DNA of 64,000 nt, from contig CDMY01000305.1 of the NCBI GenBank assembly GCA_001179505.1, positions 310,001 through 374,000 on the forward strand. Direction: 5' to 3'. Source of the stretch: Vitrella brassicaformis CCMP3155 (taxonomy: Eukaryota; Protista; Chromerida). The position numbers were made by a program, and so were the translations under genes. How positions within the stretch are numbered: position 1 is the first letter of the stretch; each line of letters begins with the position of its first letter. Of the stretch, positions 56,950 to 63,700 are shown one piece after another. Under the pieces are notes generated by a model. The model did no database searches and was not told the origin of the DNA. It worked only from the letters and a program-made list of their open reading frames with translations.

Positions 56950-57278
56950 CACGATAGAAGCACACAGACAAACAGGTGACTGACTCAAAAGACGAGCTGA
57001 GAACTGCCGGAAGATGAGCTCGCAACATTAATCCAGGCAGATACCTTCAACCAGGCTGAACCACCACCGAGGCAGGCACGATGGATGCACGACATGGCGT
57101 GGCTCTTTCGTCGTGCTCGACAAGATCCGATGATGCATCTCCCGCTGAAGATCACTCGCAGCACCAAGCGCATCGGCACTGGCACGGGATGCAGCGAGGG
57201 AACCAATGCAGCGACGCAAGCATGGCGACGACAGCATCAGCTGACGTGTGCAAATGGAGGAGGAACAGGAGAACCAGC

Positions 57279-59033
57279 ATGATGCCAATGACGCCTTTGT
57301 TCGGCCTCCTTGCTGGCTTCTGTCACCTTCTCGTGTCGAGTGCATTCACCCTGCTGCCCTTGGCGAGAGATCCGAGGCGTTCATGGCCTGCCAATGCAGC
57401 TGTCAGACGACCCTCTGGCACTGCCCTGTCAGCCGAGGGCGTGCGGAAGAAGAGGCGGCACAGGAAGGGACCGGCCATCAGCCCAAGCAGTCCCCGGTAC
57501 CTCCTCACACAACAAGGCCGGCGCGCCATGTCCAAGGACCGCAGCCTCCTCGTCAAGTCGGAGATACACCGGGTCAGAAGGGCGCTGAGGGAACAGCGGG
57601 CAGCCAAGCTCGACTCATCGTCGTCACTCCAAGATCCTTCGCAGAATGCACCGAGTCTGCCTTCGCTGGAGGAGAGGTCGGCGCCCGAGCGGCTGCAAAA
57701 GGTCATCAGCCGGGCGGGCATCGCGTCGCGTCGAGCGGCGGAGGAAATGATCCTCGACGGGAGGGTGCGTGTCAACGGGGTGGTGGTGACTGACCTGGGT
57801 GTCAAGGTGGACGCACTCGGCGACCGTGTGACTGTGGACGGGCGGAAGATCGCCGTGCGGCCGCCGGAGGAAATCAAGTGGATTGCCGTGCACAAGCCAA
57901 AGGGATACATCTGCTCCATGAATGGTACGTTTGCATAAAGTGGGGGAGGGGTGGCATCATGTGTCACCATGTGGGTGTGGTGTTCCGTCGCCGTGCCTCT
58001 GTGCAGATGACCGTGATCGCAAGACGGTGAAGGATCTCGTCCCAATGGCTGAACGGCTCAGGTACTTGCCACATAGGCAGCCGCCATGCAATCGGCCACT
58101 TTGCTCGTCAATCTGTGTCTGTGTGGTTTGTGTGTTCCCTGGCTGACAGGTTACTGCCCGTCGGCCGTCTGGATCGTGACAGCTCGGGCCTGCTGCTTCT
58201 CACAAACGACAACAAATGGTCAGCCACAAACAGACCTCCTGAAACAGCTCATATGGCGGCTGCCATCACTCCCCCCCCCCCCTCTCTCTCTCCCGTGTCT
58301 ATGTGTCAGGTTGCATCCCCTCACCCACCCTTCGTATGGCCATCAGAAGCGCTACATCGTTACTGTCGACAACGGCACACCCAAATAGTGAGTGGCCGAG
58401 GAGGAAGGCAAGTGAACCTAATTATGCTCCATCCCGTGTGGTCTCTTCTGTAACCCTTCAGCGATGTTCTGAACGAGCTAGCCGAGGGGGTGCTGCTGCC
58501 CGGGGAGCGCACCAAGACGGCTCCCGTTTCAATTGGGGTGTTCTTCGAACCAAAGACATCTAGGAAATCGGTGAGTGAGTGGCTGACTGGATGGATGGAC
58601 GGCAACATTTGTTGACGAGTGTGTGTCGATCAGTTTGGGACTCTCGAGGTGACTCTGCGCGAAGGCCGCAACCGCCAGCTGAGAAGAATGATGGAGGTCA
58701 GTATGCAGTCAATGTGCTTGCGCAGACATATGTACAGCTGCTCAAGCAGCAGCTCACGCCTCCGTCGTACGTATCATGCCTCAGTTCATCGGCCATCCGG
58801 TGTTGAACATCCGTCGAGTTGACTTCGGGCCCCTGACACTCAAGGGCATCACCACACCTGGCCAGTGGCGGGAGCTCAAGCCCTCAGAGGTCTTCATGCT
58901 CAAGCGGGCCGTCATCACCCGAGCCAAAGCCAGAGAGAGGATGCTGAGGAAGCAGAGGAAGGACGGCGAGACACAGACTGTCGCGGCCAAGGAGATCAGT
59001 GGCCTTGTCGACGGCAACCGGAGGGCCGATTGA
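57279..59033 (+). CDS. S4-domain RsuA/RluB/RluF family rRNA pseudouridine synthase, predicted plastid-targeted
   Basis: Leader ending VSSAF; ERLQKVISRAGIASRRAAEEMI.DGRVRVNG (S4), HKPKGYICS, catalytic VGRLDRDSSGLLLLTND, EGRNRQLRRM, RVDFGPLTL. Confidence 0.93.
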
Positions 59034-59282
59034 ACTGCTTGTTTGTGACATGGTGTGGTGTGGTGGGTGTGGTGTGTTGGGTGTGGTACTGTGCATTGAG
59101 TGGTACAGACGTCCGTGACACATGGATGTACAGCTGGCGATCAATATATTAGTCGAGTACGCAGCTGGCGACCCAAAGGTCATTCATGTCTGGATTGGAT
59201 GTCATGTCCACACCTAGTGCTACTACCAACAACATGCCCGCGTGCCGCTCAGCACACCCATTTGTCCACACGACCTCAAAGG

Positions 59283-60290
59283 CTAGATGAAAGGCCTTAC
59301 AAAGTTCGCTGAGCCTGTCGCGACCCTAGTCCTGCGTGTACGCTCATCCACCAGCATCAGAAACGACTCACGGTCCTGCCCATCGCTCTTGATGGAGTCC
59401 AGATATGCACCAGTGCCAGGCACAGTCAGACTCGAGACAAAGCTGTCGTACTGGCTCTTGATTTTGAGGCCAGATTCGTCGAATATTCTGAGCTCTCTCG
59501 GTCTCAAGTTCATGTCGGCATATAGCTCCTCAGCCACTCGGTCAGCCAGCGCTTGCAAAGCCTCTTGCTTCGGCAGCTGAATGTCCCGCACCTCGTCGAT
59601 TGCAATGCCGACGAGACTCAGCTCGCGCACCAGCTTGCGAATGTCCACCGATCGGTCCACATAGATGGGCGCGCCGAAGCGGTAGTAATCCACGACGTAA
59701 GGGAAGTACGCCGGATCGGCGTCGATGAACACCGGCTGATCTCTTTTGCTCGTCCCCAGCTGACTGGCCAGCTGCCCAAGCACAGTGTCGGGATGCTTGG
59801 CAAGAGTTGATCTGGCGACAGCGAAGGGCTGGCCGCCCACATCCAGACGGACAGGCTGCTCCTGCACCATCAGAGAAGGCAAAGAGAGTTGCTGCACGAC
59901 GGCTGGCGAGGGCGGCGGGGCCTCCGGTGTGCCGGCCAGTGCGGGAATGGCTGGCGTCAGCGAGATGAGGGCGATAAGTGGAAGAGCCGCACAAGAGATG
60001 AACGCATGTTTGAGCATCGCCTCCATGCGTCTTGGCCATCCTTGTGCACCACTTTCCTCCCTTGTCGTCGGCTGCTGTTGTCCGCCTTCATGAAGGCCGG
60101 CAGGTAGCCGACTGACCCAAGGCTGTCTTGTGTTGGCCTGAAGAGAGGGCGAAGCTGCTGATCTCCCGTGCAGCAGTGGTCGTGGCGCGAGTGTGGTCCA
60201 GCAGAGGGCAGGGGGAACGGCAACCAATGAATGGATAAGCAGCACCACCAGCACCATCGACAAGACGCATTGTCGCAGATTCATCGCCAT
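59283..60290 (-). CDS. Intronless KCTD-type BTB/POZ (T1) domain protein with long organellar leader
   Basis: VRLDVGGQPFAVARSTLAKHPDTVLG..VFIDADPAYFPYVVDYYRFG..ELSLVGI is the canonical T1/BTB pattern; single 1008-bp reading frame. Confidence 0.88.
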   Translation of the reverse strand: MAMNLRQCVLSMVLVVLLIHSLVAVPPALCWTTLAPRPLLHGRSAASPSLQANTRQPWVSRLPAGLHEGGQQQPTTREESGAQGWPRRMEAMLKHAFISCAALPLIALISLTPAIPALAGTPEAPPPSPAVVQQLSLPSLMVQEQPVRLDVGGQPFAVARSTLAKHPDTVLGQLASQLGTSKRDQPVFIDADPAYFPYVVDYYRFGAPIYVDRSVDIRKLVRELSLVGIAIDEVRDIQLPKQEALQALADRVAEELYADMNLRPRELRIFDESGLKIKSQYDSFVSSLTVPGTGAYLDSIKSDGQDRESFLMLVDERTRRTRVATGSANFVRPFI

Positions 60291-60411
60291 CTGCAGATCT
60301 CCTGTTTCTTGAGCTGCAGCGCACCACAACAGTCAGGTATGGCGCTGGAAAGCCTCGAATGCCTTTTCCCATTGGATCGCATTCTCAGCTCGCATCTTTC
60401 TCCTCTCTTGT

Positions 60412-60663
60412 AACCGCTCTCTCCTCTCTTGTTCTACGACTTAGTCCAGCAAACGACTCGTATTCAGCGGACGGCCGTGGGTTTCGGTCTGGAGGCCTCG
60501 TGAGTGTGTTCCTTGGGAGTGTGTTCCTTGGGTTCCTCTGTGCATGTGGAGCGTGCGTGGGTGATTCCTGTTGCGTGTCGTCGTTTGATTGTGCGTGAAA
60601 GACATGGGACTTGGCCGTCAGGCCGCTTAGGACATTCCGTGAAACCGCTCTCTCCTCTCTTGT
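60412..60663. repeat. 21-bp direct repeat AACCGCTCTCTCCTCTCTTGT in the BTB/uL4m spacer
   Basis: Exact copies at 60412-60432 and 60643-60663, with a tandem GAGTGTGTTCCTTGG pair between them (about 60502-60531). Confidence 0.85.
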
Positions 60664-60749
60664 GGCAGAGGGGTTTTTTGACCTTCGCCCGAGCCGCATT
60701 TGGTGCAAGATCTTTGCAAGATCTACAGGTTCAGGGAGTTGATCTTTCG

Positions 60750-63700
60750 ATGGAGCGAATCATAAGAAGACCGGCCCTCGCACAGCTGACGGGGCGGCTT
60801 CGGCTCCTCTGCGAACAGAGGCAACGAGCGTTCTCAACCGTGGCAGAAGAGGCGACGTCCGCCGCCCTGCAGCAGAGCCCAGCGATACAGTTTGACATCG
60901 ACCCTCAGGCGCTGGATGAGGACAGTGCAGCTGTGGCAGAGTCGGAGACCATCAAGGCCGTCACACCAATACGGGTGAGTGGGCAGCACACACGTATCGA
61001 TGACCATGAGCTGACCTGTCTTTTTCTCTTTGCTGATATTGCACGGTGGCAGGCGTGGCAGGCGCCTCGGCTGCCGAGTATCCATGACCCGCCCGTCATC
61101 CGCCGCCCTGGAGAGATCGTTGATGTGCGCACCATGATACGCAACTGGTGGGCCTTCCCAGGTCAGTCAAACCAACACAAAGAACAAGAGATCAGCCAGA
61201 CACTCAGATGTTGTCTGGTTTGGTATCTGCGGTGCGTGATCCATCGTATCAGCTGTTGGGTTCAATTCCATCCTGGAGGTGCCCGTGCAGCAGTTTGAGG
61301 TGCTCGAGGGCGAAACACCAAACGACTCCGAGACAATCGGTCGGCTACGCAGAGTGCCTATGAGTGCTTCGGTTGCTGGGAGGGAACGTCCGACTCATTC
61401 CCGTGTGCTCCTTTCTTTCGTCTCTTTTGTGTGGTTTGCCTGTCATGTCAGTGTTGCCGAATGACATCTTCGGTCTGCCTATTCGGCCAGACATCCTGCA
61501 TCAGGTGGGGGGGAGAGAGAAGCCGTCTGTCACACACCTGTTCGTGTACCCGCCTTGATGTGTTTGATCAGTGCTACTGGTTCCACCGACGTGCACTGAT
61601 GGGGTGGGACGAGCGGATGCAGCTCTACCAGTGGGAGGTACGCACACACGCACCAGACAATAATGCGACGACACTTATGGATGCGTCTGGTGCGTGAATT
61701 GTGAATGCAGTGGTACGGCTCGCACAGAAAGCTCAGATCCCAAGTCAGATCAGGTGAGCTAGGTCACGGAGTGACTGTGTCGATGTGCTGTGCATCGTTC
61801 GTCATTCATGTGCTCTTCACATACACTTGTGCAGGAATGTCTCGGATTGGTCAGCGGAAGATCTCCGGCAAGTACCTGGGCGTCAAGGCACACCCGCTGC
61901 GGCCACACGACTGGAGGAAAAAGTGCCACAAGAGACGTACGTACGCGACCCTGCCTGTGCGGATATATGTGCTTGCGTAAATCGGCTTTCCTGTATGTGT
62001 GCATTTGTGTGGTGCCTCCCTGATGTGTGTGTGTGTGTGTCAGTGCTCTGGCTGGGTCTCAAGAACATGCTCTCCGTCAAATTTGCCCAGGTGGGTGCGA
62101 CCATCTGAGCTGTCGTCAAACGCCTGGATGACGCGTGTGTGCGTGTGGTTTGTGCGTGCAGGACCAGCTGAAGGTTGTGGATCACTTCTACCTCCGCTCA
62201 CACAAGACCAAACACGCAGTCAGATACCTAAGACGCATCGTCGGTGAGTGAGTGCACTCACTGATGGGGAAATGGGTGGGCGGGCAGATGGGCACAGCAG
62301 CTCAATCGAATCCCCCTCTCTCCCTCTGTATGTGTGTGCAGGGAATCGGTGCAACTCAGCGCTGCTGGTGCATGAGGGTCGCGGCGACGTCAATGACAAC
62401 TTTCGATGGGCCGTGGCGCACCTCACAGCCGTCAGGACGGAAAACGTGGAGGTGTGTGAAGACACACACAGATGCAGACAGACGTCAGAGGGTCTATCCA
62501 TGTCTGTCTGTGTGTGTGCATCAATCAGGGTTTGAATGTGTATCAGCTGCTCAAGTATCGTCAGCTGGTCATCACCGAGAAGGCGCTGCAGAAGCTCATG
62601 TGGGAGATATACCACTACCCCGAGAAGAGGGGATGGGTCAGAAGGTCAGACACACACCCACACCACCCGTTGCCCCCCTATCCCACACATGGCTGCCATA
62701 AGTAAGTGGACCGGTGCTGTCATGCCGTGTTTGTTGTGTTTATGTTGGTCAGGGCGGCCACGCCGGACGGCAAGCCCGTGAAGCTGCCGATGAAGGTATG
62801 CACAAGCATCGCCATGCCATGGGCAGGGCAGCCACATCCATAGTATGGGTGGGGGCATGGCATACCCACTGTGGGTGTGACGGCGTCTGTAGGTGCCCGG
62901 GTGGAACAAGGAGTGGGTGGAGAAGAAGGAGCGTCAGAAGAACACGCAATACGACAGGGTCTGCAGCTACACACACGATGGGCAGCGGGCCGTATGCGTG
63001 TGTGTGAATCGACTCGTTCTGCCTGTTGGTCATGTGCGTGTGTGTATTAGTCTGCTTTGTTCCGCGAGCTGCGCAAGTGGAAGTGGAACTACGAAGAGCT
63101 CAAAGGACCGCTGGTATGCATCCCTCCCATCCAAGCACACCCACCCACCCCACCGACACACGCACCAGCTCACATGTGCCCATGTGGTGTGCGATTCAGA
63201 AAGTGCCGCGCCACGACCCATTCAAAGGTACCCAAAGAAACATACCAATCAATCAGCAACATGTGTATACGTGTGAGTGTGTGTTCAGATTCCGTCCGTT
63301 TCATCTGTCCATGTACGCCAAGCGGCCGCCATGGGAGAAATTCGAGGAACTCTACAAGGCAAGGCAGACCATTGCACTGCACACCACACATCGAAGCATA
63401 CACATGATGACCTGCTCTGTGTGTGCGTGTGTGTCAGGACGACGAGCCGCTTGAAGAGGAGGAAGACCTGCAGGCGCTCGAAGACATCAGGAACGCACTC
63501 GATGTGAGGGAAGCGAACGAAGGGTCATGACACGTCCCTTCCTGCATGTGTGTCGACTCCACCTCCTGTCTGTCTGCATGTCCGTGTGTGTCTTTCGTCG
63601 ATCCATCAGGAGAGGGAGACGCTGCACACGGCGGACTTTGACGTGATTGACGACACGGGCGAGCTGAGATCGAGGTCACTCAGCGACATTGCACGAGGTG

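Follow-up and report, generated by a model that had tools for sequence, protein, structure and literature searches.

Introduction

BTB domains of the KCTD type act in the cytosol as oligomerization modules or as cullin-3 adaptors, and the adaptor role calls for a compartment with a ubiquitin system, whereas the thylakoid lumen contains neither a cullin nor a ubiquitin system. To our knowledge, the BTB/T1 domain is considered a module confined to the cytosol or the nucleus. The gene described here joins such a domain to an N-terminal leader that resembles the presequences of lumenal proteins in complex plastids. It lies on the reverse strand of a 64,000-nucleotide stretch (the window) of contig CDMY01000305.1 in assembly GCA_001179505.1 of Vitrella brassicaformis CCMP3155 and encodes a protein of 335 residues, in which an endoplasmic reticulum (ER)-type signal peptide, a transit-peptide-like stretch and a second signal-like unit precede a T1-type BTB domain and a C-terminal tail. 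The best single reading of these sequence features, held with slightly less than even confidence, is that a Sec-type route would take the BTB domain to the lumenal side of the thylakoid.

Several rules are available for reading such leaders. The program ASAFind checks for Phe, Tyr, Trp or Leu at position +1 of the transit peptide (PMC12136025). Chromerids as a rule conserve a Phe at this position, although less strictly in Vitrella, and Sec, Tat and SRP/Alb3 insertases have been reported for chromerid plastids (PMC6668581). In this study, we describe the gene structure, the transcript, the domain content, the leader anatomy and the selection acting on the gene and its paralogue, and from these we infer the probable targeting steps and the final location of the product.

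Transcript and reading frame

The BTB gene is expressed and its whole leader lies within the mRNA. The exact 335-residue protein is found on a JGI transcript contig (P0003/L007) that is 100% identical to the window, free of gaps, over 60369..59139, and the complete open reading frame (ORF) of an MMETSP transcript (P0001) differs from this protein by one residue. The coordinates 59283–60290 of the original prediction, which had been made from the sequence alone, match the ORF from the first ATG to the stop codon. The 5′ ends of L007 and of L002 and L008, the last two being transcript contigs of a paralogue or variant, all lie at the same distance of exactly 79 nt from the ATG, yet the three contigs differ in their first 13 nt; this points to a true 5′ end and not to a break in the assembly. 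As no AUG occurs in 60369..60291, Met1 is the first AUG of the mRNA. The signal peptide had been quoted earlier from Met12 (MVLVV); the peptide itself is real, but the first AUG lies 11 codons upstream (MAMNLRQCVLS-MVLVV).

In the RNA-type runs X1–X3, the contigs skip six GT..AG introns of the pseudouridine synthase gene downstream and seven of the ribosomal L4 gene upstream, and no joint is seen between 59166 and 60324, inside the BTB gene. The claim that the gene is intronless is thus borne out by the collinear L007 and by the joint-free X1–X3 contigs. A GTGAGT at about 59370 was considered as a splice donor and rejected, since transcripts read through it and the tail beyond it is homologous in paralogues. 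RNA contigs with the depth of the gene body extend to codon 38 or further, and others extend to −34 and past it; the depth of the X2 contigs, which are assembled contigs rather than raw reads and leave room for minor internal starts, is 14.9 over codons 38–88 against 16.7 over the gene body. The expression depth of the gene is similar to that of its neighbours in the three RNA runs. Transcripts beginning downstream of the leader had been named in advance as grounds for giving up the prediction; L007, the position of the first AUG and the X1–X3 contigs all place the leader inside the transcript.

The public NCBI model (P0004; 244 aa, window 59283–60017) starts at Met92 (MLKHAF) and drops the first 91 codons, which are present in every transcript contig. 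An open frame of 132 codons with the base composition of the leader arises by chance in about 2% of shuffles, and this leader frame is open in both paralogues. An Rfam scan of 59000–61500 gave no credible RNA family.

Anatomy of the leader

A Kyte–Doolittle scan gives exactly two hydrophobic peaks, at aa 8–26 and aa 97–115, with 19-residue means (KD19) of 2.55 and 2.12. The first belongs to a signal peptide of the layout MAMNLRQ-CVLSMVLVVLLIHSLVAV-PPALC/W (a slash marks a predicted cut), with n-region MAMNLRQ, h-region C8–V25 and c-region PPALC, so that Ala stands at −3 and Cys at −1; the signal peptide and the cleavage sites were judged by manual rule. The following stretch, aa 31–86, starts with Trp and is rich in Arg, Ser, Thr, Pro and Ala. 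Its first part, aa 31–68, contains 4 Arg, 2 His, 7 Ser/Thr and 5 Pro, and its sole acidic residue is the last one, E68. The G+C content at third codon positions (GC3) is 0.48 in the transit-like stretch (60033–60200) against 0.64–0.74 in all other parts of the coding sequence (CDS), as might be seen if non-coding DNA had recently been recruited into the frame.

The second unit, aa 87–119, is composed of RRMEAMLKH, AFISCAALPLIALISL and TPAIPALA/G. It carries RR at 87–88, K94, a 16-residue apolar core with a central Pro, and ALA at 117–119; its c-region has Pro at −7 and −4 and Ala at −3 and −1. The charge is +3 before the core, and neither Lys nor Arg occurs over the 26 residues after it. This charge distribution matches a signal peptide rather than a stop-transfer anchor.

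The three-part leader of the original prediction (signal peptide, transit-like stretch and second n-h-c unit) is therefore present in all its parts by hydropathy and composition. At the sequence level, the elements of a tripartite lumen presequence occur together: a signal peptide, an acid-poor transit region with an aromatic residue at +1, and an A-x-A unit. The cargo of such a presequence would also be expected to be homologous to known lumenal proteins or to have a demonstrated lumenal location; the relatives of this cargo are leaderless BTB proteins. The proposed twin-Arg (Tat) signal was not upheld, because the paralogue described below has R-T-S in place of P-R-R and the R-R-M-E-A context is off consensus: instead of an S/T-R-R-x-F-L-K-like context, the protein reads P-R-R-M-E-A-M.

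Selection on the leader

The second hydrophobic unit is a constrained, translated element under purifying selection. This was revealed by comparison with P0002 (transcript L002:80–883), a 79% identical paralogue with the same leader and a shortened, different C-terminus that lacks most of the tail. L002 matches the window only at 60356..59533, with 86% identity, and then diverges, so P0002 comes from another locus. P0005, P0006 and L008 seem to be chimeras in which the assembly mixed both gene copies; in L008, the 5′ end of the paralogue is joined to the 3′ end of the window locus and to the neighbouring gene.

Between the two copies, aa 93–121, which comprise the second core and the A-x-A motif, show seven synonymous and two non-synonymous changes (P = 0.003 against neutrality, P = 0.04 against the signal peptide and P = 0.002 against the transit stretch), and the A-L-A of the second unit is kept. 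The signal peptide (aa 1–30) has one synonymous and five non-synonymous changes, all five replacements falling in the hydrophobic core and leading to hydrophobic or small residues (Met, Val, Ala, Gly). For aa 31–92 the counts are one and 11, with a burst of replacements at aa 78–88 (G-W-P-R-R, against E-W-R-T-S in the paralogue), and for the fast-evolving linker (aa 122–146) three and nine. The BTB domain is under purifying selection, with a ratio of non-synonymous to synonymous rates (dN/dS, omega) of about 0.43; omega for the signal peptide and the transit stretch is uninformative because of too few changes. The synonymous divergence (dS) is about 0.04 in the first 88 codons against 0.36 in the BTB domain. 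Gene conversion has thus probably homogenized the 5′ end of the pair, which blurs the dN/dS comparison there. The transit-like stretch appears barely constrained, as would fit either a fast-evolving transit peptide or young coding sequence. The loss of RR in the paralogue indicates that the twin Arg is not required, and makes a Sec-type or spontaneous route more likely than Tat.

BTB domain and C-terminal tail

The sole Pfam domain found is BTB_2 (PF02214; E value 2.5e-12, 47.4 bits against a cut-off of 21.4); the match covers aa 160–243 of the 348-aa TTG form, equivalent to aa 147–230 of the 335-aa protein. An AlphaFold (AF2) model of aa 133–335, a monomer built on an alignment of 12 family members, has a mean pLDDT of 77.7, rising to about 90 over the BTB domain. 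In Foldseek, the BTB part matches the T1 domains of Kv4.3 and Kv2.1 and the BTB domains of KCTD5/9/17 with a probability of 1.00 and a TM score by target of 0.65–0.73 over about 86 columns, at about 30% identity. The domain is thus the canonical KCTD/T1 BTB that the original prediction recognized. The prediction also took the C-terminal tail to be of no known type, and this agrees with our results: its 105 residues form four helices in the model, the tail folded alone gave only noise-level matches among solved folds (best Z 5.5), and an ESM Atlas shape search returned only BTB_2 families.

Family and origin of the leader

An exhaustive HMMER search of representatives with aa 133–335 returned 841 proteins at E ≤ 0.001, only a handful of them close. 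Nine near relatives were looked up by name, and all are from Vitrella except one Logan sequence. The BTB gene belongs to a Vitrella-specific family of small proteins that combine a T1-type BTB domain with a helical tail. The paralogues P0008 (CEM22871.1), P0009 (CEM15987.1), P0010 (CEM10207.1) and P0011 (CEM06410.1) are 34–41% identical to it over BTB and tail, and the tail aligns as homologous across the Vitrella paralogues. P0008 (218 aa), P0009/P0156 and P0010 begin 3–17 residues ahead of the BTB domain and are leaderless; most members of the family lack an N-terminal extension and are presumably cytosolic.

P0011 (281 aa; L003:1501–2504) starts with a signal peptide, MMLVSLPVLLVLVPTVLA/DTSQAKCDSDGDKC.., followed by an acidic Cys-containing stretch, a form backed by the transcript-derived proteins P0157 and P0158. 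It has no second hydrophobic segment, and its leader is encoded by two mini-exons before a single BTB and tail exon. P0011 is apparently a second, differently built BTB protein sent into the secretory pathway, and its signal peptide weakens the prior that the BTB domain of this family must stay cytosolic. Of the 150 nearest representatives, the window gene and P0002 are the only ones with two hydrophobic segments before the BTB domain. A maximum-likelihood tree unites these two with 100/100 support on a long stem of 1.14 changes per site, and this clade groups weakly (81/92) with P0008 and P0011, so that the signal peptides of P0011 and of the gene pair may or may not share an origin. A search for BTB proteins with the same leader in other algae had been suggested as a check; the search of representatives gave near relatives in Vitrella only, and a metagenome scan for leader-bearing relatives found nothing. 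That homologues might lack the leader had been offered as a ground for refutation. Most relatives are indeed leaderless, but this is read as a recent gain and not as an argument against the leader.

The gene had also been proposed to be a retrocopy. Neighbouring genes have an intron about every 100–150 nt, whereas the BTB gene has none. Its close paralogues, however, are similarly built: P0008 is intronless, BTB and tail lie in one exon in P0009/P0156 and in P0011, and P0010 has one intron. Intron poverty is therefore a family trait, and no A-run that might be a poly(A) remnant follows the transcript end at 59139. With no 3′ A-tract and with paralogues of this kind, the retrocopy proposal is not sustained, and no intron-bearing parent can be named from the paralogue gene structures. 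The leader of the window gene is continuous with the BTB domain in one exon, unlike that of P0011. Nor was a captured lumenal leader recognizable: a word search with aa 1–132 matched only the gene itself and its paralogue, and an ESM Atlas feature search with aa 1–135 gave no usable match. As a plausible history, we infer that a leaderless cytosolic form (like P0008) gained a signal peptide (like P0011 or the form starting at Met92), and that a new signal peptide and transit stretch may then have been added upstream, the old signal peptide becoming the lumen signal.

Feature coordinates and neighbouring DNA

The features of the gene and its surroundings are listed in Table 1.

Table 1. Features of the BTB gene and its neighbourhood in window coordinates
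Feature	Position	Strand	Basis
ORF; first ATG at 60290	59283..60329	-	ORF list and sequence
Complete single-exon CDS, 335 aa and stop (TAG 59283-59285)	59283..60290	-	ORF, transcript assemblies, collinear L007
5′ untranslated region (UTR), 79 nt, without AUG; in-frame TGA 60330-60332	60291..60369	-	L007, L002 and L008 starts
3′ UTR, at least 144 nt, convergent with 3′ end of pseudouridine synthase gene	59139..59282	-	L007 end at 59139; joining RNA contigs
ER-type signal peptide, aa 1-30, predicted cut C30/W31	60201..60290	-	KD19 2.55; (-3,-1) rule by eye
Transit-peptide-like stretch, aa 31-86, W at +1	60033..60200	-	Composition; GC3 0.48
Second signal-like unit, aa 87-119, predicted cut A119/G120	59934..60032	-	KD19 2.12; paralogue codon changes
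Pro-rich acidic linker, aa 120-146, without Lys/Arg	59853..59933	-	Composition; low pLDDT in model
BTB_2 / T1-type BTB domain, aa 147-230	59601..59852	-	Pfam PF02214
Family-specific helical C-terminal tail, aa 231-335	59286..59600	-	Paralogue alignment; model
Downstream S4/PseudoU_synth_2 gene, at least 6 GT..AG introns of 63-91 nt	57021-59137	+	L008:1337-2605
Repeat of about 222 nt, in divergent region between BTB and ribosomal L4 genes	60433-60654		
24-nt direct repeats flanking the 222-nt repeat	60409-60432, 60640-60663		
Upstream divergent Ribosomal_L4 gene, at least 7 short introns	~60664-62200	+	

The downstream S4/PseudoU_synth_2 gene encodes a classic bipartite plastid leader (..LLVSSA/FTLLPLARDPRRS), and its 3′ end is so close to the BTB gene that RNA contigs, including L008, join both. 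An ORF in the first-exon region of the Ribosomal_L4 gene, MERIIRRPALAQLTGRLRLLCEQRQRAFS, resembles a presequence of the mitochondrial type more than a signal peptide. The 222-nt repeat between the BTB and Ribosomal_L4 genes is flanked by direct repeats of the sequence TG(T/A)AACCGCTCTCTCCTCTCTTGT. It is about 60 times over-represented in DNA run X6 (depth 764 against 12.8), and in the RNA runs its depth reaches 22,000 in X3 against about 110–230 for genes; many contigs break at its edges (60433 and 60650–60654). It has one copy in the window and no Rfam match. It may be a short dispersed element or a promoter-bearing repeat.

Discussion

The leader suggests a route in several steps. The ER signal peptide would carry the chain into the outermost plastid compartment, and the Trp-starting, basic, hydroxylated and acid-poor stretch would carry it across the inner plastid membranes to the stroma. 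The second n-h-c unit would then insert N-in/C-out in the thylakoid membrane by a Sec-type route, with BTB domain and tail on the lumenal side. Release by the thylakoid processing peptidase at ALA/GTPEAP would be most likely and continued anchoring less likely; from the sequence, a soluble lumenal form thus appears more likely than an anchored one, and a Sec-type route more likely than Tat. As the lumen lacks a cullin or ubiquitin system, the BTB domain could act there only as a homo-oligomerization module presenting the tail. More tentatively, and on balance doubtfully, the T1/KCTD BTB domain would provide a soluble oligomeric scaffold on the lumenal side, or an anchor whose one conserved helix it bundles into a membrane assembly of 4–5 helices; the anchored variant might form a minimal channel or serve a photosynthetic complex as an accessory.

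Plastid import is favoured by W31, which at +1 satisfies the F/Y/W/L rule of ASAFind, and by the same style of leader in the neighbouring pseudouridine synthase. Basic residues only before the core, the 16-residue core with its central Pro and the P-A-L-A/G end count for a lumen signal. Several observations weigh against a lumenal BTB protein. No BTB protein is recognized outside the cytosol and nucleus, none was found there in a full-text literature search, and the proposed location is a prediction from sequence features. A word search (proteins of 184–586 aa) found no homologue of the leader (aa 1–132) in any known lumenal protein, and neither the representative search nor the metagenome scan found orthologues outside Vitrella in which its conservation could be checked. 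The low GC3 of the transit-like stretch, together with 11 non-synonymous changes against one synonymous, may mean that it is young or under hardly any constraint. With a KD of 2.12, the second segment has the hydrophobicity of a possible membrane anchor, and its core is invariant between the paralogues while the first core drifts (five non-synonymous changes), a constraint that exceeds what a disposable signal usually shows. RR is not conserved in the paralogue. Finally, no 'BTB', 'POZ' or 'tetramerisation' entry occurs in the thylakoid proteomics supplement of Sobotka et al. (2017), which carries little weight as it was matched by term and not by Vbra identifier.

The same hydrophobic core could instead be retained as a transmembrane helix. 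The protein would then be a type I protein of the endomembrane system or plasma membrane, with the signal peptide cleaved in the ER, the 56–66-aa Ser/Arg/Pro-rich stretch as a disordered ectodomain, the second segment stopping transfer, and BTB domain and tail in the cytosol, where oligomerization would bundle 4–5 membrane helices. This would keep the BTB domain where all known BTB/T1 domains reside, with the nucleus as the only other location; the literature search found no exception. It would also account for a KD19 over aa 97–115 above the usual transmembrane threshold and for a core that is invariant despite 4–5 synonymous changes, as for a retained helix. For a stop-transfer segment, however, the charges are on the wrong side, with RR and K before it and no Lys or Arg for 26 residues after it; three prolines and the canonical P-A-L-A/G end are likewise unexpected, and the sum on the Hessa scale of about +2 kcal/mol (an indicative value) implies marginal insertion. 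The supposed ectodomain lacks Cys, an N-x-S/T sequon and any fold, and it starts with Trp as plastid transit peptides do. We consider this topology unlikely. Import into the plastid with a second domain that is no lumen signal appears improbable. Here the domain would be a class I-like anchor, or an uncleaved envelope or thylakoid anchor with a stromal BTB domain. The hydrophobic domains are 66–70 aa apart, within the '60 ± 8' rule (PMC6242988), and dinoflagellates, the sister alveolate lineage, have such leaders (PMC4217693); but the class I domain of dinoflagellates is directly followed by an Arg-rich hydrophilic stretch (PMC4217693), in place of which the Vitrella protein is Pro/Glu-rich and lacks Arg. 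Class I leaders go with plastids that have three membranes and receive proteins via the Golgi; the Vitrella plastid has four membranes. The only other plastid-type leader of Vitrella read here, that of the pseudouridine synthase, has no second hydrophobic domain, and a stromal BTB domain would break the positive-inside rule.

The remaining alternatives concern the reality of the leader and the last compartment reached. The gene might be a young, weakly functional or decaying duplicate, whose 5′ extension arose from non-coding DNA and is translated as it holds the first AUG, the protein being mis-sorted or without a settled function. The deviating GC3 and the excess of replacements in the transit-like stretch would fit, as would the long stem branch of the gene pair (1.14), the loss of most of the tail in P0002 and the failure to find leader-carrying relatives outside Vitrella. 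An expression depth like that of the neighbours in three RNA runs, a BTB omega of 0.43, still stronger purifying selection on the second hydrophobic unit and a frame open in both copies nevertheless make this quite improbable, and a high omega is expected in that stretch, given the known fast evolution of transit peptides. Translation could also start internally at Met89 or Met92. MLKH-AFISC..ALA/G would then be an ordinary ER signal peptide, and the BTB domain would be secreted or ER-lumenal like P0011, the family form with a signal peptide only; the NCBI model P0004, read alone from Met92, indeed has a textbook signal peptide. Yet the upstream 91 codons occur in all transcript contigs, Met1 is the first AUG and the X2 depth is similar upstream and downstream of Met89 (14.9 and 16.7). 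Leaky scanning is unlikely, since ribosomes would have to pass several AUGs, in frame and out of frame, on the way from Met1 to Met89, and an internal start is on the whole very improbable. Residence in the periplastidal compartment or an outer plastid membrane would allow the BTB domain to keep a ubiquitin-linked role, given the ubiquitin-dependent (ERAD-derived, SELMA) machinery there. No cullin is known in this compartment, and the second signal-like unit would have no role. A signal peptide with a transit-like leader is common to periplastidal proteins (PMC12136025) and the +1 rule is weaker in Vitrella (PMC6668581), but periplastidal leaders typically lack F/Y/W/L at +1 (PMC12136025), where this protein has Trp; we regard such a location as extremely improbable.

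Should delivery to the lumenal side of the thylakoid prove true, this BTB domain would be the first known outside the cytosol and nucleus, a fold carried across three to five membranes and put to wider use. The lumenal proteome, small as it is, of this photosynthetic relative of malaria parasites would gain an unexpected component, and a cytosolic family would have been caught in the act of being re-addressed by stepwise 5′ extension. Leaderless, signal-peptide-only and three-part forms coexist in one genome and amount to a natural experiment in how multi-part organelle leaders are gained. For the public databases there is a practical consequence: as the leader codons are missing from P0004, which is 91 codons short, localization predictions from this model would misplace the protein as 'secreted'.

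Comparison with known systems

Over aa 147–230, the protein shares its sequence type and predicted fold with KCTD proteins and the T1 domain of Kv channels (PF02214). KCTD and Kv proteins carry their domain in the cytosol without sorting signals at the N-terminus, whereas the Vitrella protein has a leader, and its tail is unlike the KCTD C-terminal domain or any solved fold. Within its own family, the leaderless paralogues P0008–P0010 have the same BTB domain and tail, and the leader with two hydrophobic domains is confined to the window gene and P0002. Class I presequences of peridinin dinoflagellates and Euglena likewise have two hydrophobic domains with a hydrophilic transit peptide between them (PMC6242988). 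The spacing of the Vitrella leader, about 66 aa, falls within their 60 ± 8 aa, but the Arg-rich stretch that follows their second domain (PMC4217693) is absent (no Lys or Arg in aa 120–147); the basic residues come before the second domain, and A-x-A comes after it. The tripartite lumen presequences of complex red plastids, such as those of PsbO and cytochrome c6, have the same order of parts (PMC12136025, PMC3774753). The Vitrella protein differs from lumen proteins of the PsbO and cytochrome c6 type in its cargo, a BTB domain without a known lumenal relative, and in that its targeting is predicted from sequence.

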